A DNA stretch of 61,157 nt, the filler included, from Basidiobolus meristosporus CBS 931.73 (taxonomy: Eukaryota; Fungi; Basidiobolomycota), in NCBI GenBank assembly GCA_002104905.1. It is 3 parts of 3 records of this genome, joined end to end, with 100 filler letters (N's around TTAATTAATTAA, not from the genome) between each part and the next. Parts side by side here need not be neighbours in the genome. Positions count along the whole stretch, not along the records: positions 30,098 to 44,451 come from MCFE01001179.1; 2 more parts are not named here. One strand, written 5' to 3'. A program made the translations under genes and the position numbers. Each line of letters begins with the position of its first letter. The stretch's first letter is position 1. Below are positions 5,713-44,451 of this stretch, piece after piece. The notes beneath the pieces are model-generated. The model saw only the letters and a program-made list of their open reading frames with translations. It was not told the DNA's origin and did no database searches.

Positions 5713-7768
5713 CTATTGTATTGACCTATGCAAGTCTCTATACCCTACACTCACATTAAGTCCAACCCCACACTCAACAAGTAACTCCATTAAAATGTAC
5801 CACTCAGTGAGTATTTCTGCTGTAATGCTCTGGTTCCACAACTTTGGTAGGAACCCAATGTCTTTGTGCCTCTGTTCATTCACTGGTTCCCACACATCCT
5901 GGTCTTCAGCCAGCACTGCAAGGTCTAGCACCTCATCTGCCAGTCTTTGCAATAAATCCTTGCAATATTCCAGTGCATTTTCTTGAGCACCGCTCTTGAA
6001 GAAGTGCTGCAACCTCTTGGTGTGCCTGTTAATGTTCCAAAATTCCACTGAAGGCATTGTGATAGTCTTTTGAGCTCTTGACATTGTAGCCTTGTCTGCC
6101 AGTGGGATCTCCACTCTGACAACAATGGAGGATGTGGAGGCTGTGGCAGACAAATTGCCTTTCTCAGTAAAATCAACTACCTTGCTGGAGTGTAGCTCAA
6201 CTGACTGCACTTCCAACTCATGTGAAAGCAGCTGGTTTCTTGTTGGTAACTCTGGTTAGCTATGATGGGATTCAGTCTGTTCTGGACTTACAGTGCTAAT
6301 TGGAAAGAACTGCAGCTTTTCTAGCATGCCTCCCTGTCTCAGGCCTGGGTAGACATTCTTCCCTTTACCTTTTCCTTTATCACTACCAGATCTTTCACTG
6401 CTACTTTGTCTGAGTGCTTCTTGTAAAGAACTCCGTTTTCTCCCAGATAAATTCTGCTCTGTGCATCTCTTTTGGCCTGACTATCCCTTGCTGGCACTCT
6501 TCTGGCAACCTGATGTTTCTTTGCCACTTGTTTTGAGCTCTCAACTGTAGTTGTGATGGGCTCCTGTAAAAGTAGCTGGTTTTTATCACTGCCAGGTCCT
6601 TCACTGCTACTTAGTCTGGGTGCTTCTTGAGTGGTACAGCACTTTTTCCTCAATGAAGGTTGTGCTGGTGCATCCATGTCTGTCTGCTAGTCCCTAATTG
6701 GCACTCTTCCAGCAACCTGATGTATCTTTGAAGCTTGTCTGGAGCTTTTGGCCCTGCTTGTAATAGGCTTCTGAGGAAGCCACTGGTTCTTAGCCATGGC
6801 ACCCTTGTTCATCTGCCTTTCATAGTTTCTTCTATTCTTAAGACACTTTATTAGCCTACCAATGCTGGCCCAAAATCTGTTTGCCCATTTGAGTCCAGGA
6901 TAATGCTCATGGAACAAGTCAAGTGCATCTTGCTTGGCCTTGAGTTCCTGATGGTCCCATGGTATGCCAGCCATGAGGTGATGGCATGCTAGACTTCTGA
7001 TGGCCTCCTGTATATTAGCCCACTCTTCATTATTACACTCCACAGCTTCACAGATCTTCAATGACTTTTGATTTTAGGCTCTGGTATAAACACCATATTG
7101 TCTCCCTCCCACACTGTGATAGGTTTTTCTATGAGCTTTATCTTTGGGCACTGTTGTTGTGCTTCAAAGACTGTGTGGTGTTCCGCTGCTGTTACATTGG
7201 GAAATGGCTCAATTCTTGGCTGTGGCATTGAGCTACTTGAGTTTCTTTGTTACAGCAAAGATGCTGCTTTCTCTACCTGGGATATTGATTGCTCTGCAAG
7301 TATTATCTGCTCTTCCTGTTTCTGGACTATTTCCTGACTTCTCTAGGCCATTACATCTATCCTGTCAGCCACTGCACCTAATTGCTTCATTAATACTTTG
7401 AAATGAGCTGACAACATACTTGCTAATATGGGTGGTGGTGATGATATCATGGCCACATTCTGATCTTGAGCTGAGGGCACTGTGCTTGCTACATTCTCAT
7501 CTGCCTGAGCATAATGGTCAGCCTGTGGCTGTGCAGAGGTTCTCAATTGCCTACTTGACTGAGAGCCTGAGGAGCCCGCATTATCACCTTCAATGGGCAC
7601 ACTGTCCAGAGGGCCATTTTTGGATGTAGCCCTGTTTGTTGCACTGAGTGTCAAAGCAAGCTGTTGTCCAACTGTTCTTCCATTGCTGTCAGCAATGGGG
7701 TTTGGCTGAGAGCTAGACAACTTTGCTTTATTTTTTGGTGGTGTATATATGGAAGTGAGACAAACCAA
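5713..7768 (-). pseudogene. Fragmented accessory ORF of the CACTA-like element, function unknown
   Basis: A series of minus-strand ORF pieces (5713, 6339, 6687, 7343) with homologues at 18753-20368 and 39761-40805. Confidence 0.55.
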
Positions 7769-8123
7769 AGGGGAAATAGTGTGACATATACATTTGTATG
7801 TGGTGCTACAACTTTATTTATAATGTTTACTATGGCAGGTCCGCATTGAATCTTACATTTATGTAGGTGCAATGTCCCAAAACAAGACTGTCTTAAGTTC
7901 ACATGAGTATTGATCAAAAGGTGATATAATAGCATTACATTGTTGAAGGTCAAGCTGTTTGCCTTATGGACAAGACTACTTTGACTCATTGCTGTAAGCA
8001 AAGAGAAAAAGACCATGTGGCTATTGTGGCAAGCCTCTCAGCCATGAAGCACTGAGACAGCATAGGAAGTACCAAAAGGATCATGGCCAGTGTTTTGCCA
8101 CCCAGGTCATATTTGACCATTCA

Positions 8124-11100
8124 TTGGTCACTATTATACCAACATTATCTTGCCGGTCAGTTGATACTTCTATATTGGCACCTGTCCATCTTTGTCACCT
8201 TGCACAAACTGAGTCAGGTGAGTTTGTGACACCTTTAAGCCCACCTCAGCCTTCCAAATATGGCATGCCAAGTGATAGCTCTCGCAAAGAAGGTTCACTG
8301 ATGGATTTTGAGCCTATCTCCCCTAACAACAGTACCACATATGAGCCCAGTCAAGTCCCTATATGCAATGAAATAGCACCCATTGAAACAAATGCCAAGG
8401 ATACTTTATGGAGCCAGGTGAGCTCAGTAATCCAGTTACTGGTGAATGATGTAATGTTGTGGCTAGAGAAGTGGCTCATTTCCACTAATATCTGTAATGG
8501 GGTCTTTGAGGAGTTAATACTACTTCTTGCCAAAATCATACCAGGATGCAACTTACCATGTACATGGTACAAGTGGACAAATGTCATGCAGCTGGCAACA
8601 TATGATCCAGAGACTGTCCTGATTCCAGCATGTGTTAACAGCTGCATGGCATTCACATCCAAAAATGCTACTATTGCAACATGTCCAGGTTGTCAGGAAT
8701 CAACCACCATTGAGGAAAAACATTGTTCACACTCAGGGTATATTCCAGTCATACCCCATCTGAGGAAGCTGATGCAGTCCAACAAATATTGCAAAGCTAC
8801 ACAGTACCACACTCAGTATCAATCAAGAGCAAATCAATCCAATAGATTTGATGGTAAACATTACACACAGCTAATAAGCAAGGGCTACTTTGAAGGTATG
8901 TATAACCATGCCTTGGCTTCAGCACTTAATGGATTTGTATTAAAAAAGTACTGTACCAGCATATCCTGCAGGCCACTGAATCTCATCAAGCTGAAGCTCC
9001 CACCCATCCTACAGTATTAGAGCAATAATCTGATGGTAATCTTACTGGTATCTGGGCCTTAGTCACCGTCCAACCTGAATAGATACCTGTACTCATTGCT
9101 GGATGATTTTATATGCTTTCCAGTGGGATAACAATAAATGGCCATCATGTAGAAGCTCATATTATTGTCTGTATTGGAGATACCCCAGCCATCAGCAAGA
9201 TAGCAGGTTTTTCTGGGCACAATGGACGGTATTGCTGTCAAATGTGTGAGATCCAGGGTATTTACTCCATAACTCACACACATTATTATTACCCAGACAC
9301 CAGCACTTTGAACATCATCTTTCTATAGAGAGAACATACAGAAGTGAGCTTGCAATTGCCGCAAAGCTGGCAAGCTATAAGCCATTGGCTGGAATATGGA
9401 ATCAATTGGAAACCAGAAATACTTGAGATAGAGGGCATCTGTTGAAGCAAAAGCTTTCCACTGGGAGCAATGCATTTGCTTTTCAACAATATCCCTGAAC
9501 TGATGACTAAGTTCTGTATGGGGCATTTCAAGCTAAATGAGCCATTTGAGATACTGAAGAAATTTGAAAGAATTGGCTAGATATTACAGAGTATCCTCTA
9601 CCCTTAGTACTTCTCACAGGTGCCAATTAATATTCATATGCTTATGCAACAATACAAATGCACAAATGCAAAGATTGGATGAACTGGATATGTATTTATT
9701 CAAGTGGTGTTCTGAAGTCATTACTACCAAGAGTACATTGGAAGCATTGGGAGTCATATGTGGATATTGTAGGAATATTTATCCAGAAGTGGATCACCAG
9801 TGCCAACTTGATGAATCTACAGCTGTTGTGTTAGGAGTTTGTGACAAAATTTGAGCTGCTATACTACGTGCATAAAGCTGAATGCATATATCTCTGCTGC
9901 TACAATATCCATTAGACTTGTTCTATTCGATAGTGCCACATTGAGCCATGAGTGCCAAATGATGCCATAGTGTGCCAGAGAGGCCAAGTGAGCCTCTACC
10001 TGGCCACAGAGTGTGAAACATAGCTCTGCAACTTCATGCAAAGCAGCCCCTGTGTTTCACCTATTGTGTTGGAGAAAATCCATTTTTTGACCTTTTTTTT
10101 GGATCACTGTTGTGCAGGATGTGTTAGAGCACAAGCAGATTGGAGATTTGCATCTGGTACTCAATACCCATGGCACTCTGAATCTAGCTCCTGTAGCTTG
10201 TATCATGTCACAAAAATGAATGGCACTATCTTGGTCCACTGGTACTATCTGGCACTATAAGTGCTTTGTATAGCTCTTACTTTAGGTCTAATATTTAAAT
10301 ATAGTGCCAGATAGTACCAGTGGACCAAGATAGTGCCATTCATTTTTGTGACATGATACAAGCTACAGGAGCTAGATTCAGAGTGCCATGGGTATTGAGT
10401 ACCAGACGCATACCTTCAGTTCTCCTGTGCTCTTACACATCCTGAGCTACATTGATCCACAAAAAAAGGTCAAAAAATGGATTTTCTCCTGCGTAATGGG
10501 CGAAACACAGGGGCTGCTTTACATGAAGATGCAGAGCTATGTTTCACACTCTGTGGCCAAGTATAGGCTCACTTTACCTCTCTGGCACACTATGGCATCA
10601 TTTGGCACTCATGGCTCAATGTGGCACTATCCAACGGAACAAGTCTATTATCTACACCATCTTGCACAGCAGGTGGAGAATATTGAGCCTTGCTTCACCT
10701 TTTGGGAATTTCCTATGGAGCAGATGTGTGGGGAGATAGGAAGACAAGTCAAGTTGCAGGTACTACCATATCCCAATCTCATCAAGAATATTACCTTCAA
10801 GTCTGTCATGGATGTGATGAGTTGGCACATGAAGGAGAGCTAGAAAGGGCTGGAAAATACTGAGGACAAATGTGCACATGGAGACACCTACGCCTATGGC
10901 ATTAAGAAGCTAAGCAGCCCCAATGTGTGGGTAATCAGTTAAGTAATCCAAAGTTGGGTTGGCTGCAACAAGCAACTAATTTCTATCAGGAAAACTTTAG
11001 CAAGGTATGCCAGATTTCTCATGGTCACAAGCCAACTTCTACACCATTCAATATGTAATTCACACAAACAAGAGCCAGAGTGCACCTATATGGGGAACCA

Positions 11101-30097: not shown

Positions 30098-32556
30098 CCG
30101 CCGTTTCCGGTGTCGTAAGCTCCAGCGCCACCATTGCCACCTCCATTACCGCCGTTGTCGCCGCCATTTCCTCCACCGTTACCAGGGCCATAGCCGCCTG
30201 CACTGCCGTTACCACCGCCATTGTCACCACCGTTACCGCCATTGCCACCTCCATTACCGCCGTTGTCGCCGCCATTTCCTCCACCGTTACCAGGGCCGTA
30301 GCCACCTGCACCGCCGTTGCCACCGCCATTTCCACCATTGTCACCACCGTTACCGCCGCCGTTTCCAGTGTCGTAAGCGCCGGCTCCGCCATTACCACCT
30401 CCATTGCCGCCGTTGCCTCCGTTATCACCACCGTTTCCTCCACCATTACCAGGACCATAGCCACCAGCACCACCGCTGCCTCCTCCATTACCACCGCTGC
30501 CTCCTCCATTACCACCGTTGTCTCCGCCATTGCCACCGTTACCACCGCCGTTTCCAGTGTCGTAGGCTCCAGCTCCACCATTGCCGGCACCGCCGTTACC
30601 ACCATTATCGCCACCATTTCCTCCACCGTTACCAGGGCCATAGCCGCCTGCGCCACCGTTACCACCACCATTTCCTCCATTGTCACCACCGTTGCCGCCA
30701 TTGCCACCGCCGTTTCCAGTGTCGTAAGCTCCAGCACCACCATTGCCAGCCCCGCCGTTACCTCCGCCGTTGCCACCATTATCGCCACCATTTCCTCCAC
30801 CGTTACCAGGGCCATAGCCGCCTGCACCGCCGTTGCCACCGCCATTTCCACCATTGTCACCACCGTTACCGCCATTGCCGCCGCCGTTTCCGGTGTCATA
30901 AGCTCCAGCGCCACCATTGCCACCTCCATTACCGCCGTTGTCGCCGCCATTTCCTCCACCGTTACCAGGGCCGTAGCCGCCTGCACCGCCGTTGCCACCG
31001 CCATTTCCACCATTGTCACCACCGTTACCGCCGCCGTTTCCAGTGTCGTAAGCGCCGGCTCCGCCATTACCACCTCCATTGCCGCCGTTGCCTCCGTTAT
31101 CACCACCGTTTCCTCCACCATTACCAGGACCATAGCCGCCAGCTCCACCATTGTCTCCACCATTACCGCCTCCGTTACCACCGTTTCCAGTGTCGTAAGC
31201 TCCAGCACCACCATTACCTCCGCCGTTGCCGCTGTTATCGCCGCCATTTCCTCCACCATTACCAGGACCATAGCCGCCAGCGCCGCCGTTGCTACCACCA
31301 TTTCCACCGTTGTCACCGCCATTGCCGCCGTTACCTCCGCCGTTTCCAGTGTCGTATGCTCCGGCACCGCCGTTACCACCACCATTGCCGCCGTTACCAC
31401 CGTTGTCTCCTCCATTTCCTCCACCGTTGCCAGGGCCATAGCCGCCGGCACCACCATTGCCACCGCCATTTCCACCATTGTCACCACCGTTGCCACCGCC
31501 GTTTCCAGTGTCGTAACCACCAGCACCGCCATTACCACCTCCATTGCCGCCGTTACCTCCGTTATCACCACCGTTTGCACCGCCATTACCAGGGCCGTAA
31601 CCACCAGCACCGCCATTACCACCACCATTTCCTCCGTTGTCACCACCGTTACCGCCATTTCCACCACCGTTTCCAGTATCGTAAGCTCCAGCACCACCAT
31701 TTCCTCCGTTATTGCCGCCATTTCCTCCACCGTTACCACCGTTGTCGCCACCATTACCGCCGTTGCCACCGCCGTTTCCAGTGTCGTAAGATCCAGCGCC
31801 ACCATTGCCGCCTCCGTTTCCACCGTTGTCACCACCGTTTCCACCACCATTACCAGGACCGTAACCACCAGCACCGCCATTTCCACCGCTGCCACCGCCA
31901 TTTCCACCGTTGCCACCGCCATTTCCGGTGTCGTAGGCACCAACGCCGCCATTGCCACCTCCGTTTCCTCCGTTGTCACCGCCATTACCTCCTCCGTTAC
32001 CGCCACCATTTCCTCCGCCGTTACCAGGACCATAACCGCCGCTACCTCCATTGCCGCTTCCACCGTTGTCACCACCATTACCACCGCCGTTGCCAGAGTC
32101 GTAAGCGCCAGCACCACCATTGCCTCCTCCATTGCCGCCGTTGTCACCACCGTTACCTCCTCCGTTGCTAGGACCATAGCCGCCGCTTCCTCCATTTCCT
32201 CCACCGTTTCCACCATTGTCGCCACCATTGCCACCATTTCCGGTGTCATAGCCTCCGGCACCACCATTGCCTCCTCCGTTACCACCGCTCCCTCCGTTGT
32301 CACCACCATTACCTCCGCCATTGCCTGGGCCATAGCCGCCGTTTCCACCGTTTCCACCACCGCCATTACCGGCTCCATTTCCTGCATAATCGGGCGCACC
32401 ACCGTTTCCTGCACCACCGGAGTCACCACCGTTGAACACATCGGTCACATCGTAAGCGCCATTGCTTCGTGCCCAAAAGCGACGATCGATGGTGGCGGAG
32501 TTGATGGCAGCAACGCCGGACAGGATGCAGAGGAGTTTTGGTGCGGAGAATTTCAT
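30098..32556 (-). CDS. Secreted Gly/Asn-rich tandem-repeat protein with Tyr-anchored modules (>819 aa; C-terminus lost in the gap)
   Basis: ATG at 32556, signal-like N-terminus MKFSAPKLLCILSGVAAINSA and a dibasic RR at residues 25-26. The open frame runs 2.46 kb, with varied synonymous Gly/Asn codons. Confidence 0.88.
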
Positions 32557-33447
32557 AGTGGATTAAAGTAGCGTAAATTAAAGTAAAGAGAAGAGATTGT
32601 TCGGGTATCTAGATAAAGAATATTATGCAGATAATAAGTCGGTGCGGTCACTCCAACGAAAATCTCTCCCTTTTATAGTGACCGAGGGTAAATCGGTGCT
32701 TTTCGCTTCCCCCTTAGTCTCCTGATTCCTATTCCCCTAAGACGCATTCTTCCCCTGATAACGTATGCCACGGGTTTTAGTTCCGTAAGCTCGATGCCAG
32801 ATTCCCCCACAACCGACATTGTGGACATTCTTCCTGATGGCCGATTTTTTCCCTTCCATCGGTGCAAGTTCACAATGGAAGCAATGTGTGCATCCAGGCC
32901 ATTATCTGACCATTCTTACTACGCGAGGCAGTAAGCATGCAATCGAGGTCGTAGGAAAAGGGGGGAAATATCCCGGAAAATCTCATTTAGTTTGAAATGA
33001 TGAAAAGGAGATTCATTTAAACAATCAGCCATAAGTCTTACACCTGCTCATTGATCTGTCGTACAGATCCTTAGCTTTATACAATGACTGTCCCTGTTGT
33101 TGCTCCAAATATACAACTGTCCCTGTTGGGGCTTCAAATTTCCTAATTTTTATTTTCGTTCATGGTTTCATGATCGAACGAACATACGCCATCAGAAGTG
33201 GATTGCTTTACCATGATTCCATCACCTGGGTTTTATGCTCTATTGGTATACTTTTGCATACCAAGACAAAAACTGATTATCGTCATTTGAACAGAGATGT
33301 GGGACTCCTAACAGTAAATGCTTCAATGTTGACAGCTGTTAAGTTTAAGTTTATTGAATTCAATCCACCCACATGAACAATTAAATTGTTCTAGCTTGGT
33401 GTTCTGCCTACTAATCTGGTAAATTTTGCAGAACTCTTGGTTAATCC

Positions 33448-35726
33448 TATTGTAAAAAAATTCGTAATTACACTTGAATATTCTCCTAACTTGGTTACCT
33501 AGATCATTACCCACAAATCTTAGAGAATTCGGACTAAATTCCCTGTTGGGATTTACTTGAATAATATCACCAAAACATCAGATACCCCACACATAAGGTT
33601 TTGATCAGTTGTCCAAACAGCCCCACACTCTGCAACATTTTCTGTTGTAAGAGTCTTGGATATACCGGAAGTAATTGGGAGAACAAGTAGATTATGTGGT
33701 TTTCACTTGATGACTTATTGAATGTCAAAGTAGTATTTGTACCTTTACATGGTCTTGGCATAATAAACATGTAGAATATGTTTAGAAAGGTCCCAAGAAC
33801 ATGTGGGCAAAGCTTGGGGCTGTTTGGGCAACTTATCTAATTTTCATGCTTGGAGTACCTGATGTTTTAGGTGAAAGTTGTCTGAGTTAATCCCAACAAG
33901 GAATTTGGTCAGTATCCACTAAGATCTGTAGGTAATGATCTAAGTGACTAAGTTTGGTGAATATTTAGGTGAAATTACAAATTTCTTACAACACTCCCAC
34001 TCAGCTAAATGTTTGCACTGACTAGTCCAAATTTTGACCTATGATATTCAAATTTTTCTCTAGCTAATGGTTTGGTAAATATGTCTGCAATTGTTTCATA
34101 TGTAAGACAGTCAGCTAAGTTAGCCAGGCTATTCTCTATACTTTCATGTGTGAGATGATGTCTACTATCTATATACTCAGTTCTAACATGAAAAGTTGGA
34201 TTTTTACCTAATTATTCTCATCATTGATCATCTTGAAATCAAGTAACAGGTGTGATTTGACATAAGCCAAAGTCTTTAAAAAGCTTTCTTAACCACATTG
34301 CATTCTTTGTAGGCTTACAGGCTGTCACTTACTCTGCCTCTGTGGTGGAAAGTGCTAGTGTTGACTGCTTTCATGAGTTCCATGAAATTGCTCCTTTGCA
34401 GTAAAGAAAGGTACATCCTGTGGTGGATCATCTGTCTTTTAAATTTGGTCCCCAATCAGCATCAGAGTATCCCACAAGATCCTGTTCTGACTCCTTATAG
34501 GTGTACCTTATATTGCAAGAGTCTTGGAGATATTGGAAGTGATTGAGAGAACATGTAGATTATGTGCTTTTTGTTGTAAGAGTCTTGGAGATATTGGAAG
34601 TGATTGGGAGAACAAGTAGATTATGTGGTTTTCACTTAATGATTTATTGAATGTAAAAGTAGTATTTATACTTTTACCTGGTCTTGGCATTACAAACATG
34701 TAGAATAGGTTAAGAAAGGTCCCAAGAGCATGTGTGCAAAGTTTGGGGCTGTTTGGACAACTTTGAGAATTTTCATGTTCTGGGTACCTGGTATTTTAAT
34801 GAAAATATTCTAAGTAAATCCCAACAAGGAATTTGGTCAGTATCCTCTAGGATCTGAAGGTAATGATCCAAGTGACTAAGTTAGGTGAATATTTAGGTGG
34901 AAATACAAATTTTTACAACACTCCCACTCAGCTAAATGTTCATACTGACTAGTCCTAATTTTGGCCTAAGATATTCAAACTTGTCTCTAGCTAATGGTTT
35001 GGTAAATATGTCTGCAATCATTTCATCTGTAGGACAGTAAACTAAGCTAACTAAGTTATTGTCTGTAGCTTCATGTATGAAATGATGTCTAATATCTATG
35101 TGCTTGGTTCTAGCATGAAAAGTTGGATTTCTACCTAATTGTATACATCCTTGATTATCTTGAAATAAAGTAGTAGGCATTTTTTGACATAGGCCTAAAT
35201 CTGTAAGAAGTTTTCTTAACCACATTGCTTCTTTTGTAGCTTCACAGGCTGTTGTATACTCTGCCTCTGTGGTAGAAAGTGCTACAGTTGGTTGCTTTGT
35301 TGAATTCCATAAAATTGCTCCTTTACAGTAATGAAAGGTATATCCTGTGATGGATCATCTGTCTTTTAAATTTGGTCCTCAATCAGCATCAGAGTATCCC
35401 ACAAGATCCTGTTCTGAATCCTTATAAGAGTATCTTAATCAGATATCAGCAGTTCCTTTTAGGTATCTAAAAATCCGCTTAACTGCTGCAATATGATCAG
35501 ACCCATGGTTCTGATTATGTTGGCTGACAGCTCCCACTGAATATGAGATATCTGAACATGTTCCAAGCATGATATAAATCAGACAGCCAACCATAGATTG
35601 ATAGGGAAAGTCAGGACTTTCAGATGGCACCAAGCTCTCTTGATTTGGTTGAGTTTTGACCAAGTTAAGGTTTGTCTCCATTGGGGTAGCTCCTGGTTTA
35701 CAATCTTCCATTTTGTACCTCTTTAG
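33448..35726 (-). mobile_element. Nested copia 3' ends: LTRs 33643-33993 and 34572-34920, each followed by PPT and RNase H/RT remnants; degenerate + strand LTR from ~33448
   Basis: LTR termini TGTTGTAAG/TTACAACA, adjacent CTCCCACTC (PPT, minus strand), and ORF fragments MWLRKLLTDLGL and MEDCKPGATPM. Confidence 0.85.
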
Positions 35727-38700
35727 TGTTGTAAAAAATTTGTAATTCCACCTAAATATCCACCCAACTTAGTTGCTTAGATTGTTACCCTCAAATCCTA
35801 CAGAATACTGACCAAATTCCTTGTTGGGATTTACTTAGAATATTTTCACCAAAATACCAGGTACCCAGAACATGAAAATTCTCAAAGTTGTCCAAACAGC
35901 CCCACACTTTGCACACATGTTCTTGGAGCCTTCCTTAACCTATTCTACATGTTTTTAATGCCAAGACCAGGTAAAAGTATCAATACTACTTTTACATTTA
36001 TTAAATCCTTAAGTGAAAACTGCAGAATCTATTTGTCCTCCCAATCACTTCCAATATCTCCAAGACTCTTACAGCAGGCTATGAGCCCCAAGCTGTCACT
36101 CTCTGCAATGTCTACTACTGCTATTACTGGAACTTTTCCCTCTGCTGAAAAGTTGGATGGATCTAAGTACCAAGTGTGGAAGGTGAAGATGAAGATGCTG
36201 CTACAAGAAAGGGGCCTTTGGGATATTGTCATGGCAGAAGAATGCCCTCCTAAAAACATGGGAGAGGAAGCCTTAAAGTACCAGAAGAAAGAACAAAGTG
36301 CCTTTAACTGCATTTGCCTTAATGTTAAAGACAAATTGCTAATTCAATGATCAAGAGCAAAAACAGCAAAGAATGCCTGGAAGTCATTATAAGACACCTA
36401 CCAGTCATGTTCAGCTGCTAAGAAAATGTATCTGAGTCAAAAATTCTTTACTACAAAGATGTGCCAGGAGAAGAAATGAAAAATCTAATTAACAGAACTA
36501 CCCTGCTGGTAGATGAGATGGAATCTGTGGGTGTACCAACTACTGATGAGGATGTGATAGTTACCATCCTGAATAGCCTGACAGACAAGCTTCAGGGCCT
36601 TGTATCAGCCCCAGAGTCCAGAACTGAAGATTTGACCTTAAATTATGTATATGGAAGGCTCCTGGATGAAGAATTAAGAAAATCAAGCGCCAATAAGAAG
36701 GAAGAAGAAAATGCTTTAATAAGCAATGATAACCAACAAAGGAGGTACCCAAAACCCTACAAAGGCAACAGCAACCTGTTTTGTAACTACTGCAAAAGGA
36801 AAGGACACACATCAGACCAGTGTCTCAAAAGGAAAGATAATCAGCAAAAGAAGCCTGAATATGGAAATGCTACAGCAACTAAAGATAGACTATTCATATC
36901 TGCACTAAATATGACCACAAACAAGGATTCTCAGACATGATGTATTGACTCTGGAGCATCTCAACACTTTACACACCAAAAAGAACTTTTTACCCAATAG
37001 ACTTGTACCATGGTGCCATTGATCATAGTGCCAGAAAGTGCTGTATATTTTGTTATTGATTTGCTATTTTAGGGTCATATGCATGTCAATTTTGATCCAA
37101 AATTGGCACTATATGGCACCATCTGGCACTCTGTGGCATGATCAGGCACCATCTGGCATGCTATGGCACCATTGGGCACTATGATCAGCTGGAATGATGG
37201 AACAAGTCTAATATCAAGAAATTCTAATTAAGAAGGTTTTCATGGGTGACAATAGAACACTTGATGCAGTGGGAGAAGGAACTATCCAAGTTAACCTAAG
37301 AAGCAGTGAAGGAAGCCATACACTGACCTTTAAAGAAGTACTCTATGTACCAGAAATAGCCAAGAACCTACTATCTGTAAGCTAGGCCACAGCAGAAGGA
37401 CTCAGTTTCAGCTTTGACAATTCTGGATGCAAGATCACTGATCAAAATGGTGCCCATATTGCTTTGGGTATCAGAGATCAGAACCTATACAAGTCAACTT
37501 ATATTCCATCCTATTTTGAAGCCATTTTAAGTAACTTAAATGAAGAAACACCAATGCTTTGGCACAGGAGATTTGGGCACATCAATTTTGATTATTTGCG
37601 CAAAATGATCAAAGATCAGCTAATTTCTGGAGTAAAAATGGATCCCCCAGCTAATTTGGAGCACTGTGAAGCCTGTATATATGGGAAACAAGCCAGACAA
37701 CCGTTCAAGAGCTCTGGGTTAATCAAAACTAAGAAAAAATTAGATCTAATTCACTCAAATCTGTGTGAACCTATGCAAAATTTATCCTTAGGTGGGATGA
37801 AGTATTTAATCACTTTTATTGATAATTATACAAGATACACATAGGTCTGCTTCATGGAGAGAAAGGAAGAAGCTCTGTCTAAGTTCAGGGAGTTTAAACC
37901 CATGGTGGAGAGAGAAACTGGTGAAAAAATCAAGAAAATACGCTCTGACAATGGTGGAGAATATACCTCAAAACTCTTCATCCACTTCTGCAAAATTCAT
38001 GGGATAAAGCAAGAGACTACTGTACCTTACTCCCCACAGCAAAATGGAGTAGCAGAACATGCTAACAGACCAATAATTGATATGGCAAGATCTATGATCC
38101 ATGTTCAAGAATTATCCTATGATTTTTGGGCAGAATCAGGTGCCACTGTTGCATATCTTAAAAATAGGAGTTATAACAAAATACTTAGTGATTCTACTCC
38201 ATTTGAAGTATGGTATGGATACAGACCAAATGCAGAACATCCAAGAATATTTGGGTGTACAGCATATGCCAAGAAACTGCCCAGAAATCAGTCAAAAATT
38301 GGCCAAAAAGTGTGAAATGCATATTTTTGGGCTACTGCAATGAGAGTAAAGCATACAGACTCTACAATACCAAAGCAAAGAAACTAATCAAGTCTAGGGA
38401 TGTGTTGTTTGATGAAGATTCAGAATTTTCACTAAAAATCACATCAGATGATGACAAAAATCTGATCTCAAATCAACCAATTGTCAGGATTGAATCAGGG
38501 CAAAATAATAAAAATCTTTTCACTCCAGAGGACTCTACAACCATGGTTCAGCCAGAATCAGTGCCCAGGAATATCCCAGAAGTGATCATTCCAGTATCAA
38601 ATGCCCAGAGATCCAATTGGACAAGAAATAGCCCAAATTACTATATCAATGAGGGTAAAAACTTAGCCTATGCCTATGCAGTCCATATTGATGAGCCCCA

Positions 38701-39545
38701 GACTGTAAAAGAGGCCCTAAATAGCCCTCAGACAAAGTTTTGGAGATCTGCAATGACTGAGGAATATCAGGCCCTGATGGAAAATCAAACTTGGGACTAA
38801 GTCAAATTACCAATCAACCAAAAATCAATTGGATGCAGATGGGTCTTCAAGACAAAATAAAAGGCTGATGGTAAAATTGAAAGATACAAAGCAAGACTTG
38901 TGGCCAAAGGGCACTCTTAAACAAAAGGACTTGACTATACTGAGACCTTTGCACCGGTAGCCAAGTTTAATTCCATCAGATTAATATTGGCTATTGCAGC
39001 CAAATATAAGTTTTTTATTCATTAAATGGATGTAAAAACTGCATTTTTGAATGGAGAATTTGATGATGATGTGTATATGGACCAGCCTGATGGGTTTGTT
39101 GACCAGGATAACCCCCATTTGGTCTGCAAGCTTAAAAAGTCACTATATGGTCTCAAACAATCACCAAGAGCCTGGAATTGCCAGATAGATTCTTATTTGG
39201 AATCCTTGAGTTTCAAAAGGAGTAATGCTGACTATAGTATATACTATAAGCCAGATAGAGCAAATCCAGTTCTATTAGCTCTATATGTGGATGATCTTAT
39301 TATAGCTGCCAATAACCTAGAAATATTGGAAGAGACTAAATCCAGCCTATCTAAGGAGTTCAAGATGTCTGATCTAGGAGAACTCAGTTACTACTTAGTG
39401 ATTAAGTTCTCCATAGACAGAAGTACCCAGACTATCACCCTAAGCCAATCCAAGTATATTTAAGATACACTAAAGCAGTACCAAGTGGAAGACAGTAAAC
39501 CAGCAGCTACCCTAATGGAGACAAACCTTAACTTGGTCAAAACTC
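35727..39545 (+). mobile_element. copia copy B (5' LTR 35727-36076, degraded gag-pol, 3' truncated)
   Basis: LTR followed by PBS GGCTATGAGCCCC and by gag, PR, IN and RT fragments with stops. Inserted after TTTAG inside an older RT remnant. Confidence 0.9.
36999..37209. mobile_element. 211-bp MITE of the same family as the 9914 foldback
   Basis: Ends AGACTTG...CAAGTCT, with TSD AAT at 36996-36998 and 37210-37212. The empty site TACCCAATATCAAG is visible in copy C at 42021. Confidence 0.9.
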
Positions 39546-40720
39546 TAAAAACAAATTTCACAAAAAACTTAGTCAATATTTTTCATCACAACAATGTATA
39601 AGTGGCTATTGATTGGTTCCCTGCCAATTTGCTCACTTTCTGATCCTGGACACTCTATCACCTCCTATATTTGTGTGAATTGATTGGCTTTTGCCTCTTT
39701 TTCACACTCCTTACTTCCTGACTCAACTGTTTCTCTTACTTTTCATGCATACAAATGGATTTATTTCCATTGAAACTTCAGTTGTACCTCAATTGCCAAT
39801 TGTATTGACCTATACAAGTCTCTATACCCTACACTAACATTAAGCCCAACCCCACACTCAACAGGTAACTCCATCAAAATCCACCACTCAATAAGCATTT
39901 CTGCTGTAACACTCTGGTTTGACAACTTTGGTGGGGACCCTACAGCTTTATGCCACTGTTCATTCACTGGTTCCCACATATCCCAGTTTTCAGCCAGCAC
40001 TGCAAGGTCTAGTACCTCATCTGCCAGTCTTTGCAATAAATACTTGCAATATTCCAGTGTGTTTTCTTGAGCACTGCTCTTGAAGAAGTGCTGCAACCTC
40101 TTGGTGTGCCTATTGATGTTCCAAAACTCCACTGAAGGCATTGTGATAGTCTTTTGAGCTCTTGATGTGGTAGCCTTGTCTGTCAGTGGGATCTCCACTC
40201 TGTCAACAATGGAGGCTGTGGAGGCTGTGGTAGACAAATTGCCTTTTTCAGCAAATTCATCTACCTTGCTTGCATGTAGTCCAACTGGCTGTGCTTCCAT
40301 CTCTTGTGAGAACAGCTGTTTTCTTGATGGTAATTCTTCTTGGCTATGATGGGATTCAGTCTGTTCCTGGCTTGCAGTGTTAATTAGCAAGAACTGCAGT
40401 TTTTTTGCATGCCTCCCTGTCTCAGGCTTGGGTAGACATTTTTCCCTTTACCTTTTCCTTTATCACTGCCAGGTCTTTCACTGCTACTTTGTCTGAGTGC
40501 TTCTTGTAAAGAACTATGTTTTCTCCTGGATAGATTCTGCTCTGATGCATCTGTTTTTGCCTGCTTGTCCCTTACTGGCACTCTTCTGGCAACCTGATGC
40601 TTCTTTTCTGCTTGTTTTGAGCTCTCAGCCATAGTGATGATGGGCTCCTGTAAAAGTGGTTGGTTTTTATCACTGCCAATTCCTTCACTGCTACTTTGAC
40701 TGGGTGCTTCTTGAGTGGTA
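39543..40720 (+). mobile_element. CACTA-like element copy 4 (left-terminal fragment)
   Basis: Collinear with 5448-6650. Confidence 0.8.
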
Positions 40721-40998
40721 CTACACTTTTTAAGCTGCTTAACACAGCTCCATTGTGTTGTAAAAAATCGTATTTTCCACCTAAATATTCACCTAACTTA
40801 GTCACTTAGATCATCACCTTCAAATCCTAGAGAATACTGACCAAATTCCTTGTCGGGATTTACTTAGAATATTTTCACCAAAATACCAGGTACCCAGAAC
40901 ATGAAAATTCTCAAAGTTGTCCAAACAGCCCCAAACTTTGCACACATGTTCTTGGGACCTTCCTTAACCTATTCTACGTGTTTGTAATGCCAAGACCA

Positions 40999-41034
40999 TG
41001 TAAAAGTATAAATACTACTTTTACATTCAATAAA
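40999..41034 (+). promoter_or_regulatory. LTR promoter/termination signals: TATAAA (41007) inside a 10-bp inverted repeat, and AATAAA (41029)
   Basis: The sequence TGTAAAAGTA-TAAATAC-TACTTTTACA..AATAAA is conserved across the LTR copies; the functional assignment is inferred from position. Confidence 0.5.
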
Positions 41035-41105
41035 TCATTAAGTGAAAACCACATAATCTACTTGTTCTCCCAATCACTTCCAATATCTCCAAGACTCTTA
41101 CAACA

Positions 41106-41117
41106 GGTTATGAGCCC
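41106..41117 (+). other. Primer-binding site complementary to the anticodon stem-loop of initiator tRNA-Met (half-tRNA priming)
   Basis: GGTTATGAGCCC abuts the LTR end with no spacer; it is the reverse complement of GGGCUCAUAACC. The same site is at 48817-48828 (minus strand). Confidence 0.88.
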
Positions 41118-44100
41118 CGAGCTGTCACTCTCTGCAATGTCTACTACTGCTATTACTGGAATTTTTCCCTCTGCTGAAAAGTTGGATGGATCTAACTACC
41201 AAGTGTGGAAGGTGAAGATGAAGATGCTGCTACAAGAAAGAGGCCTTTGGGATATTGTCATGGGAGAAGAATGCCCTCCTAAAAACGTGGGAGAGGAAGC
41301 CTTAAAGTACCAAAGAAAGAACAAAGTGCCTTTAACTGCATTTGCCTTAATGTCAAGGACAAATTGCTAATTCAATGCTCAAGAGCAAAAACGGCAAAGA
41401 ATGCCTGGAAGGCATTAGAAGACACCTACCAGTCATGTTCAGCTGCCAAGAAAATGTATCTGAGAAGAAAATTCTTTACTACAAAGATGCTGCCAGGAGA
41501 AGAAATGAAAAATCTAATTAACAGAATTACCCTGCTGGTAGATGAGATGGAATCAGTGGGCGTACCAACTACTGATGAGGATGTGATAGTTACCATCCTG
41601 AATAGCCTGACAGACAAGTTTCAGGGCCTTGTATCAGCCCTAGAGTCCAGAACTGAAGATTTGACCTTAAATTATGTATATGGAAGGCTCCTGGATGAAG
41701 AATTAAGAAAATCAAGCGCTAATAAGAAGGAAGAAGAAAATGCTTTAATAAGCAATGATAGCCAACAAAGGAGATACCCAAGACCCTACAAAGGCAACAG
41801 CAACCTGTTTTGTAGCTACTGCAAAAGGAAAGGACACACATCAGACCGGTGTCTCAAAAAGAAAGATAATCAGCAAAAGAAGCCTGAATATGGAAATGCT
41901 GCAACAACTGAAGATAGACTATTCATATCTGCACTAAATATGACCACAAACAAGGATTCTCAGATGTGGTATATTGACTCTGGAGCTTCTCAACACTTTA
42001 CACACCAAAAAGAACTTTTTACCCAATATCAAGAAATTCCAATTAAGAAGGTTTTCATGGGTGATGATAGAACACTTGATGCAGTGGGAGAAGGAACTAT
42101 CCAAGTAAACCTTAGAAGCAGTGAAGGAAGCCATACACTGACCTTTAAAGAAGTACTCTATGTACCAGAAATAGCCAAGAACCTACTCTCTGTAAGCAAG
42201 GCCACAGCAGAAGGACTCAGTTTCAGTTTTGACAATTCTGGATGCAGGATCACTGATCAAAATGGTGCCCATATTGCTTTGGGCATCAGAGATCAGAATC
42301 TATACAAGTTGACTTATATTCCATCATATTTGGAAGCCAATATAAGTAACTTAAATGAAGAAACACCAATGCTTTGGCACAGGAGATTTGGACACATCAA
42401 TTTTGATTATTTGCGTAAAATGATCAAAGATCAGCTAATTTCTGGAGTGAAAATTGATCCCCCAGCTAATTTGGAGCACTGTGAAGCCTGCATATATGGG
42501 AAACAAGCCAGACAACCGTTCAAGAGCTCTGGGTTAATCAAAACTAAGAAAAAATTAGATCTAATTCACTCAGATCTGTGTGGACCTATGCAAAATTTAT
42601 CCTTAGGCGGGATGAAGTATTTAATCACTTTTATTGATGATTATACAAGATACACATGGGTCTACTTCATGGAGAGAAAGGAAGAAGCTCTGTCTAAGCT
42701 CAGGGAGTTTAAAGCCATGGTGGAGAGAGAAACTGGTGAAAAAATCAAGAAAATACGCTCTGACAATGGTGGAGAATATACCTCAAAACTCTTCATCCAC
42801 TTCTGCAAAATTCATGGGATAAAGCAAGAGACTACTGTACCATACTCCCCACAGCAAAATGGAGTAGCAGAACGAGCTAACAGATCAATAATTGATATGG
42901 CAAGATCTATGATCCATGATCAAAAATTATCCTATGATTTTTGGGCGTAATCAGTTGCCACTGCTGTATACCTTAAAAATAGGAGTTATAACAGAATACT
43001 TTCGTGATTCTACTCCATTTGAAGCATGGTATGGATACAGACCAAGTGCAGAACATCTAAGAATATTTGGGTGCACAGCATATGCCAAAAAACTGGCCGG
43101 AAATCAGTCAAAATTTGAGCCAAAAAGTGTAAAATGCATATTTTTGGGCTACTGCAATGAGAGTAAGGCATACAGACTCTACAATACCAAAGCAAAGAAG
43201 CTTATCAAGTCCAGGGATGTGTTGTTTGATGAAAATTCAAAATTTTCACAAAAAATGACATCAGATGATGACGAAAATTTGATCTCAAGTCCACCAATTG
43301 TCAGGATTGAATCAGAGCAAAACAATGAAAATTTTTTCACTCCAGAGGACTCTACAACCGTGGTTCAGCCAGAATCAGTGCCCAGGAATATCCCAGAAGT
43401 GATCATTCCAGTATCAAATGCCCGGAGATCCAATCGGACAAGAAATAGCCCAAATTACTATATCAATGAGGGTACAAACTTAGCCTATGCCTATTCAGTC
43501 CATATTGATGAACCCCAGACTGTAAAAGAGGCCCTAAATAGCCCTCAGACAAAGTTTTGGAGATCTGCAATGACTGAGGAATATCAGGCACTGATGGAAA
43601 ATCAAACTTGGGACTTAGTCAAATTACCAATCAACCAAAAATCAATTGGATGCAGATGGGTCTTCAAGACAAAATACAAGGCTGATGGTACAATTGAAAG
43701 ATACAAAGCAAGACTTGTAGCCAAAGGATACTCTCAAACAAAAGGACTTGACTATACTGAGACCTTTGCACCGGTAGCCAAGTTTAATTCCATCAGATTA
43801 ATATTGGCTATTGCAGCCAAATATAAGTTTTTTATTCATCAAATGGATGTAAAAACTGCATTTTTGAATGGAGAACTTGATGAGGACGTGTATATGGACC
43901 AGCCTGATGGGTTTGTTGACCAAGATAACCCCCATTTGGTCTGCAAGCTTAAAAAGTCACTATATGGTCTCAAACAATCACCAAGAGCCTGGAATTGCAA
44001 GATAGATTCTTATTTGGAATCTTTGAGTTTCAAAAGGAGTAATGCTGACTATAGTATATACTATAAGCCAGATAGAGCAAATCCAGTTCTATTAGCTCTA

Positions 44101-44451
44101 TATGTGGATGATCTTATTATAGCCGCCAATAACCTAGAAACATTGGAAGAGACTAAATCCAGCCTATCTAAGGAGTTCAAGATGTCCGATCTAGGAGAAC
44201 TTAGTTACTACTTAGGGATTAAGTTCTCCATAGACAGAAGTACCCAGACTATTACCCTAAGTCAATCCAAGTATATTCAAGATATACTAAAGAAGTACAA
44301 AATGGAAGACTGTAAACCGGCAGCTACCCCAATGGAGACAAACCTTAACTTGGTCAAAACTCAACCAAATCAAGAGAGCTTGGTGCCATCTGAAAGCCCT
44401 GACTTTCCTTATCAATCTATGGTCAGCAGTCTGATGTATATCATGCTTGGA

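Follow-up and report, generated by a model that had tools for sequence, protein, structure and literature searches.

A Basidiobolus gene for a probable secreted Gly/Asn repeat protein built of alternating tyrosine modules

Described Gly-rich repeat proteins and the Basidiobolus gene

Silk-like structural proteins, which are recognised by a signal peptide and at least 25% Gly in an 80-residue window, have many independent origins (PMC4944945). Here, we describe a partial gene from the fungus Basidiobolus meristosporus CBS 931.73, located on the minus strand of a 61,157-nucleotide stretch of DNA (the window, in whose coordinates all positions are given), the product of which falls within this class by its signal-peptide-like N-terminus and 60% Gly, the class being a descriptive one defined on metazoans. 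We consider it very likely that this gene is real and that its product is a secreted, disordered repeat protein. The kind to which it belongs, that of secreted Gly-rich structural or disordered proteins, is already known, and the Basidiobolus protein, in which Gly/Asn repeats are organised into Tyr modules, is a lineage-restricted new form of it.

The nearest described fungal analogues are the GN-rich proteins of Glomeromycotina and Geosiphon (Pabra_AGL1/2/4, Amlep_AGLs and GpRIC1-3, from Paraglomus, Ambispora and Geosiphon; PMC8786786). The match is by description only: a signal peptide, richness in Gly and Asn, low Pro, predicted disorder and a lineage-restricted distribution. Moreover, some of these proteins have dibasic Kex2-type sites, and they are difficult to assemble and annotate (PMC8786786). 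In contrast to the protein studied here, they are 87–470 amino acids (aa) long, contain more Asn (33–39%) than Gly, show GNGNGN-type motifs and are devoid of regular Tyr-initiated alternating modules. Our homology searches, in which low-complexity scoring is weak, gave no sequence link to them and matched only a protein of Basidiobolus ranarum (see below).

The gene lies on the piece of the window spanning positions 30098–44451, which has about 38% GC, with the exception of the segment 30098–32600 (56–62% GC). This GC-rich part is a single minus-strand open reading frame (ORF), which starts with an ATG at 32556 and reaches the piece edge (30098); its translation yields 819 codons and zero stops, the frame being still open at the edge, while an in-frame TAA (32565–32563) is found 9 nucleotides (nt) before the ATG. 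The repeat protein has at least 819 aa and, once the signal peptide is removed, at least 64 kDa. Its features are as follows:

30098..32556, minus strand: partial coding sequence of the putatively secreted Gly/Asn repeat protein (819 codons; ATG at 32556–32554; 3' end cut at the piece edge)
32494..32556, minus strand: signal-peptide-like N-terminus, aa 1–21, MKFSAPKLLCILSGVAAINSA (from hydrophobicity profile and conservation)
32422..32493, minus strand: unique N-terminal segment of the mature protein, aa 22–45, TIDRRFWARSNGAYDVTDVFNGGD, preceding the array
30098..32421, minus strand: Gly/Asn repeat array of about 770 aa, with three levels (heptad, Tyr module, double module)

The N-terminus combines Lys2 and Lys7 with a hydrophobic core at residues 8–18 (Kyte-Doolittle peak 2.7) and small residues at 20–21; along with its conservation, these features of MKFSAPKLLCILSGVAAINSA suggest a signal peptide, probably cleaved around S20/A21. 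The INSAT motif of this region is kept in the B. ranarum homologue, and aa 1–21 are 100% conserved in the sequencing run X4 (see below), where the nucleotide changes are synonymous only. Within the mature chain, W, F and R are confined to TIDRRFWARSNGAYDVTDVFNGGD, which includes RR at residues 25–26. An earlier reading of this DNA, made from the sequence alone (hereafter, the sequence-only reading), saw a Kex2-type site in this pair, but the pair is not a conserved feature: although unchanged in X4, it is RQ in B. ranarum, which has INRQ where the window protein has IDRR and hence no dibasic site.

From residue 46 onward, the protein is composed of G 461, N 157, A 42, D 42, Y 29, P 15, S 14, T 13 and V 1, with zero C, K, R, W, H, M, F, L, I, Q and E, which confirms that the repeat region is free of Cys, Lys, Arg and Trp, as first noticed. 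This body (about 60% Gly over 759 residues, 20% Asn, 5% Asp, 3.7% Tyr and 1.8% Pro) has a calculated pI of about 4 and about 43 net negative charges, and the protein contains 153 Asn-Gly dipeptides and a single N-X-S/T sequon. At its first level, the array is made of the heptad NGGGNGG (21 nt), Tandem Repeats Finder detecting 21-nt periods; at the second, of Tyr-initiated modules of 21–36 aa belonging to two alternating types, GG-YGPG and GA-YDTG; at the third, of a double module of about 53 aa (159 nt). A central GGDNGG is present in every module, and the three residues before the module motif are nearly always AGG for YGPG and AGA for YDTG. There are 14 GYGP[G/S] modules (13 YGPG and one YGPS) and 14 YD[T/S]G modules (13 YDTG and one YDSG, the last being cut by the piece edge), exactly the numbers of the sequence-only reading, as are the two exceptions to strict alternation (Y257 to Y292, a YDTG pair, and Y753 to Y789, a YGPG pair). 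Since the gene sits at an assembly break inside the array, its total length, its C-terminus and possibly both exceptions depend on the assembly.

The dominant periodicity of the non-Gly positions is 3.51, its power being 54 times the mean, with autocorrelation peaks at 7, 14, 21 and 28, and no peak at 3.0 or 9. At the DNA level, 78% of the 31-mers occur only once in the array, in which exact repeats reach 158 nt at most; the block pair 30236/30911, 91% identical across 300 nt, arose by a later duplication within the array. Among the Gly codons of the array, GGG is nearly absent (2 of 461, against 197 GGT, 151 GGC and 111 GGA), which may reflect an expression-linked codon bias or the avoidance of G-runs or slippage in the repeat.

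Outside fungi, pro-resilin is likewise secreted, Gly-rich and disordered, with regular Tyr in a Y-G-x-P/G context followed by GGGN, and its function depends on Tyr cross-links, of the di- and tri-tyrosine kind in the mature material (PMC13052691). The window protein is devoid of the 15-mer GGRPSDSYGAPGGGN and 13-mer GYSGGRPGGQDLG repeats (as defined in PMC13052691), its 21–36-aa modules are unlike the repeats of pro-resilin, and its array, without Arg or Gln and almost without Ser, shows none of the Arg and Ser/Pro richness of the latter; its Tyr residues, set in two alternating contexts, are on average 27 residues apart instead of 13–15. The R&R (Rebers & Riddiford) chitin-binding domain PF00379 was not found in the 819 aa available (Pfam, E <= 0.01), and neither were the terminal domains of spidroins (flagelliform/MaSp2), the N-terminus amounting to a signal-peptide-like stretch followed by about 25 aa. 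The likeness to resilin and silk put forward by the sequence-only reading consequently stands at the level of composition and motif and falls at the level of homology, there being neither a Pfam match nor the N-terminal domains of these families. Scallop abductin shares about 60% Gly, very low Pro and few Tyr, and is regarded as an entropic elastomer of the random-coil type with presumably cross-linking Tyr (PMC13052691). It is a small protein, however, rich in Met and Phe (GGFGGMGGGX), and its N-terminal domain is Ala-rich and has Cys, whereas the repeats of the window protein have no Met or Phe, 20% Asn and a strongly acidic character. The class I cell-wall glycine-rich proteins (GRPs) of plants, such as bean GRP1.8, are extracellular structural proteins with a signal peptide and a very Gly-rich repetitive domain interspersed with Tyr (PMC5298957); their (GGX)n repeats have a period of 3, in contrast to the heptad pattern seen here. 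Similarly, the polyproline-II antifreeze proteins of springtails follow a strict Gly-X-X period of 3, from which the observed 3.51 departs. A Phytophthora "loricrin-like protein" was rejected as an analogue, having 12.7% Gly and no signal peptide (PMC5298957).

The 12-aa motif GNGGGNGGDNGG was also found in 20 bacterial genomes, and two Rhizobium loci were translated (L020:4351–5268, minus strand, and L002:1929–2759, plus strand): a signal peptide is followed by about 200 aa of NGGG/NGGD repeats, GNGGGNGGDNGG being common to both. These (NGGG)n proteins of Rhizobium ruizarguesonis and R. laguerreae have about 300 aa, an occasional D or H, no Tyr and no NCBIfam family. Their similarity to the window protein is almost certainly convergent low complexity.

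Selection on the Gly/Asn reading frame

Long ORFs overlap the array in three frames, two of them on the minus strand and one on the plus strand, and ORF length by itself therefore proves nothing. Modules of the same length are 85% identical in DNA, and 341 of the 385 differences between them fall at codon position 3. When the modules are compared in the Gly/Asn frame, 89% of the differing codons are synonymous, against 1–4% in the two other frames of the same strand and in two of the reverse ones; the third reverse frame shares its wobble position with the Gly/Asn frame and is not open. These values bear out the action of selection on the protein, which had been deduced initially from the variation of synonymous codons. 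Furthermore, modules of the same type are 95% identical in protein, while codons differ at 46% of the identical residues (random synonymous choice would give 57%) and distance along the array causes no decay, from which we conclude that the array is old and has been selected on its exact sequence, not on composition alone.

Sequences of a diverged relative come from run X4, which belongs to a separate study with the same species label and in which one contig spans positions 32384–32786. This contig differs from the window by 35 substitutions, 34 of which are listed. The 12 listed coding differences are all at the third position and all synonymous (12 of 12 at position 3 would occur by chance with a probability of about 2e-6), and the 230 nt upstream of the gene carry 22 listed substitutions and 4 indels. 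Altogether, the coding frame is under purifying selection.

Two further runs from one sample, X1 and X2, have contigs that hold the 5' end of the gene almost identically. Contigs of X1/X2 differ at 32409, where the Gly50 codon GGA becomes AGA (Arg), and some are without 3 nt at 32354; these differences may be due to alleles or haplotypes, to paralogous copies of the repeat or to the polishing of the assembly. In X4, three long contigs (3.9, 12.9 and 39.7 kb) match only a 40–60-nt Gly/Asn-coding stretch at 32302–32366 and then diverge, which suggests that this genome probably holds further Gly-rich genes, possibly paralogues.

The Basidiobolus ranarum homologue, the promoter and the flanks

When 1.84 billion representative proteins were searched exhaustively with phmmer, a single match was obtained (P0121, E = 4.9e-15), i.e., KAK9709718.1, annotated as "hypothetical protein K7432_008854, partial" of Basidiobolus ranarum (contig JASJQH010007390.1 of GCA_040143965.1). 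The N-terminus, which the sequence-only reading had singled out for comparison with fungal proteomes, therefore has one relative, an uncharacterised protein of which only 96 aa are known. The alignment pairs residues 1–48 of the query with residues 1–48 of KAK9709718.1, with an ungapped amino-acid identity of 75%, and over these first 48 codons the proportions of nonsynonymous (pN) and synonymous (pS) differences are 0.15 and 0.80, respectively. With such a pS, synonymous sites are saturated, so that KAK9709718.1 either is a paralogue or belongs to another species. Both proteins share the MKFS...ILSGV..INSAT signal peptide and the WAR.NGAYDV.DVF segment, followed by a GN-rich body with GGY-G.G and GAYDTG modules; in KAK9709718.1, this body contains GGYGAGNGGGDNGG and GAYDTGNGGNGGGNG, which we compared with the GYGPGNGGG and AYDTGNGGG modules of the window protein. 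KAK9709718.1 differs in its first Tyr module, YGAG instead of YGPG, and it also stops at a contig edge inside the repeat. The GC content is 38.1%, versus 38.6% in B. ranarum.

Two upstream features are common to both species:

32671..32677, minus strand: TATAAAA box, 121 nt before the ATG, unchanged in X4; B. ranarum has TATAAA at the equivalent place
32754..32769, minus strand: upstream 16-mer GGCATACGTTATCAGG, about 200 nt before the ATG; identical in B. ranarum (locus L024, about 9780–9796)

None of the listed X4 differences falls inside GGCATACGTTATCAGG, which is identical in B. ranarum in spite of the saturated synonymous sites. With its ACGT core and its TTATCA, a GATA-type site in reverse, GGCATACGTTATCAGG is a candidate cis-regulatory element of the Gly/Asn repeat gene family. 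This shared block, the matching GC content and the sole homologue vindicate the initial suggestion of a Basidiobolus-like host; an animal origin (mollusc nacrein/shematrin-like GN repeats) was dropped after the homologue appeared. At the B. ranarum locus, the homologue adjoins a PLD-like gene (7238–9079, minus strand) and an arrestin-domain gene (276–1345). The window gene is flanked by transposons and by nothing like these neighbours; hence the homologue may be an orthologue or a paralogue. As far as sequence comparison goes, the uncharacterised partial protein of B. ranarum is the sole true relative, and the family appears so far restricted to Basidiobolus.

The other searches gave no relative. 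No Pfam family (E <= 0.01) was found on the 819 aa, nor any NCBIfam family; the ESM Atlas returned no usable match to either the whole protein or residues 1–130. A homologue search with the whole protein and with region 1–75 returned nothing, its length window leaving out the 96-aa B. ranarum fragment. By exact look-up, neither the 819-aa product nor one copia ORF (see below) was on record. A degenerate DNA scan for GYGPGNGGGNGG across 241 million metagenome records gave 0 matches, while patterns back-translated from the N-terminus matched 449 stretches, 0 of which were confirmed. Finally, the PDB sequence search gave only a chance match (E = 5), and a literature search by motif returned only papers on spider-silk GYGPG and on G-quadruplexes.

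Beyond the gene, positions 33455–44451 are a nest of Ty1/copia retrotransposon material (LTR, long terminal repeat):

33455–35727, minus strand: 5'-truncated copia fragments with LTR-like repeats
35719–39545, plus strand: degenerate copia copy, broken into several ORFs
40748–44451, plus strand: more intact copia copy, 90–97% identical to 35719–39545, running off the piece

In the more intact copy, gag-PR-IN (41364–42950) and RT (from 42916 onward) are in separate frames. The best named matches of the copia Pol are plant and oomycete elements, at 40–48% identity, and one anonymous ENA contig reaches 77%. A segment of about 100–180 nt at the LTR ends (33455–33600; 35733–35913; 40762–40942) has a summed contig depth of about 60,000–95,000 in X1 and X2, against about 230 for the contig of the gene, and the copia family is therefore present in very high copy number in the genome. 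Between the two copia copies, at 39761–40632 (minus strand), adjoining ORFs of 82 and 209 aa without Pfam or Atlas match may represent part of a host gene or an unknown element.

Possible functions of the repeat protein

The genomic setting just described lends itself to a non-coding explanation, namely that of a non-functional GC-rich minisatellite lying beside a transposon nest and open by chance in several frames. The overlap of the array by long ORFs on both strands, the place of the gene at a contig end adjoining nested copia elements and the failure to find RNA evidence for it would all fit such a sequence. Yet a minisatellite would hardly be expected to show a synonymous-dominated divergence in the Gly/Asn frame alone, an ORF beginning with a conserved signal-peptide-like segment right after an in-frame stop, a conserved TATA box and upstream block, a homologue with pN far below pS, and exclusively synonymous listed coding differences in X4. 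Because the module comparison, the X4 comparison and the B. ranarum homologue all back the Gly/Asn frame, a satellite with accidental ORFs is very unlikely, and we regard a non-functional minisatellite as extremely improbable.

Among functional readings, an ordered bundle of polyproline-II or polyglycine-II helices, as in springtail antifreeze proteins, or a related Ca2+-binding RTX-like beta-roll, is brought to mind by a GGN/GNGG-rich sequence superficially like Gly-rich helix bundles and by GGNGGD, the first six residues of the RTX nonapeptide GGxGxDxUx. The heptad periodicity does not agree with either: the period of non-Gly residues is 3.5/7, with nothing at 3.0 or 9, which tells against the ice-binding type of bundle that the sequence-only reading had kept as an alternative. 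As there is also no hydrophobic "U" residue, no Cys, only one GGNGGD per module, no Pfam match (the RTX repeat family included), no PDB chain better than E = 5 and an AlphaFold2 confidence of only 35 (see below), such a fold is very improbable. A functional amyloid or prion-like assembly, in which the Gly/Asn/Tyr-rich, Pro-poor repeats would stack as cross-beta fibrils on the cell or spore surface, is in line with the 20% Asn and the regular Tyr spacing, with the association of low-complexity GN- and GQ-rich proteins with amyloid and with the Pro-free GN-rich secreted proteins of Paraglomus, which are classed as "amyloid" by the P/G criterion (PMC8786786). It is nonetheless quite unlikely: the repeats are 60% Gly without aliphatic or further aromatic residues, about 42 uncompensated Asp are evenly distributed (roughly one per 13 residues) and AlphaFold2 predicts no strands, so that stable beta-stacking would be opposed at neutral pH. 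Finally, the protein might act at the surface or in host interaction: it could be a humectant or hydrophilic coat, form a layer that masks the fungus from immunity or varies antigenically, or be secreted as an effector-like repeat protein. Secreted Gly-rich repeat-containing protein tribes of the rust Melampsora are ranked as candidate effectors (PMC3253089), recognition and water-retention roles have been proposed for the small GN-rich secreted or GPI-anchored (glycosylphosphatidylinositol) disordered proteins of Glomeromycotina and Geosiphon (PMC8786786), and Basidiobolus inhabits animal guts and can infect humans (PMC13370150). However, modules remaining 95% identical in amino acids despite near-saturated synonymous sites speak for a precise physico-chemical requirement, and not for diversification or a variable antigen, and at least 819 aa is much larger than typical effectors; we find this possibility unlikely, if worth keeping in mind.

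That the protein is an extracellular structural, matrix or adhesive polymer seems to us an even call. Such a chain would be intrinsically disordered and, through its turn formers NG, GPG, DTG and DNGG, rich in turns. Once secreted, it would form a hydrated polyanionic matrix, a wall-surface polymer or an adhesive, the flexible Gly/Asn loops conferring entropic extensibility and the regularly spaced Tyr serving as non-covalent stickers or as oxidative (di-tyrosine-type) cross-link points. Candidate structures would be the conidiophore or conidial wall, the capilliconidial glue, the zygospore wall and the hyphal surface, and the analogy to resilin, abductin, plant cell-wall GRPs and the tick cement GRP would be functional, with homology to none of them. 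Of all sequences, Asn-Gly deamidates spontaneously most readily, and the 153 Asn-Gly sites should make the protein progressively more acidic and richer in isoaspartate outside the cell, which could age or cure the material, or else limit the protein to short-lived structures.

Several points count against a structural polymer. The gene was found in no RNA run; the C-terminus, with any GPI anchor or binding domain, lies beyond the piece edge, and the flanks of the gene within the piece, which are retrotransposons, hold no peroxidase, laccase, anchor enzyme or other partner gene. AlphaFold2, run on residues 27–320 as a single sequence, gave a mean predicted local distance difference test (pLDDT) of 35 and no secondary structure, but a low confidence obtained without an alignment is weak evidence for the disorder of the repeat chain. 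Moreover, Pro (1.8%) and Tyr (3.7%) are low beside resilin and silk, and GN-rich, Pro-poor sequences have been tied to amyloid rather than elastic behaviour (a Glomeromycotina study citing Rauscher 2006; PMC8786786). As for spore discharge, the fungal squirt-gun mechanism needs no specialised wall structures according to Yafetto et al. (PMC2528943).

On the other side, Basidiobolus has forcibly discharged conidia, a circumscissile "rocket" conidiophore and adhesive-tipped capilliconidia (PMC13370150, PMC2528943). A disordered Gly-rich protein of ticks is adhesive through phase separation and ageing (PMC11794139), and Gly-rich, low-Pro random-coil elastomers exist (abductin), as do Tyr-cross-linked ones (resilin) (PMC13052691). 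The most far-reaching version of the structural polymer would be the first fungal protein elastomer or glue, i.e., a Basidiobolus-specific, Tyr-cross-linked or phase-separating Gly/Asn polymer, convergent with resilin, abductin and tick cement, that would power the elastic recoil of the "rocket" conidiophore or conidial wall, or make up the adhesive capilliconidial cap. We hold this version to be unlikely; if it were true, the 153 Asn-Gly sites could serve as a built-in deamidation clock curing or ageing the material.

Whatever its role, the gene exposes a blind spot of current pipelines: it breaks assemblies, both known copies stopping at contig edges, it is either unannotated or a "partial hypothetical", and it is suppressed in composition-corrected searches. 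Its product would also escape tryptic proteomics, as the mature chain is free of Lys and, past R30, of Arg. Protein elastomers and glues are familiar from animals (resilin, abductin, silk, tick cement), and structural wall GRPs from plants; to our knowledge, no comparable material protein has been characterised in fungi. Here, an extreme composition, an unusually exact hierarchical repeat and strong purifying selection on apparent "low complexity" come together in a fungus with ballistic and sticky spores. The gene is a concrete candidate for the materials of such spores, and it offers a short designable repeat unit for biomaterials.

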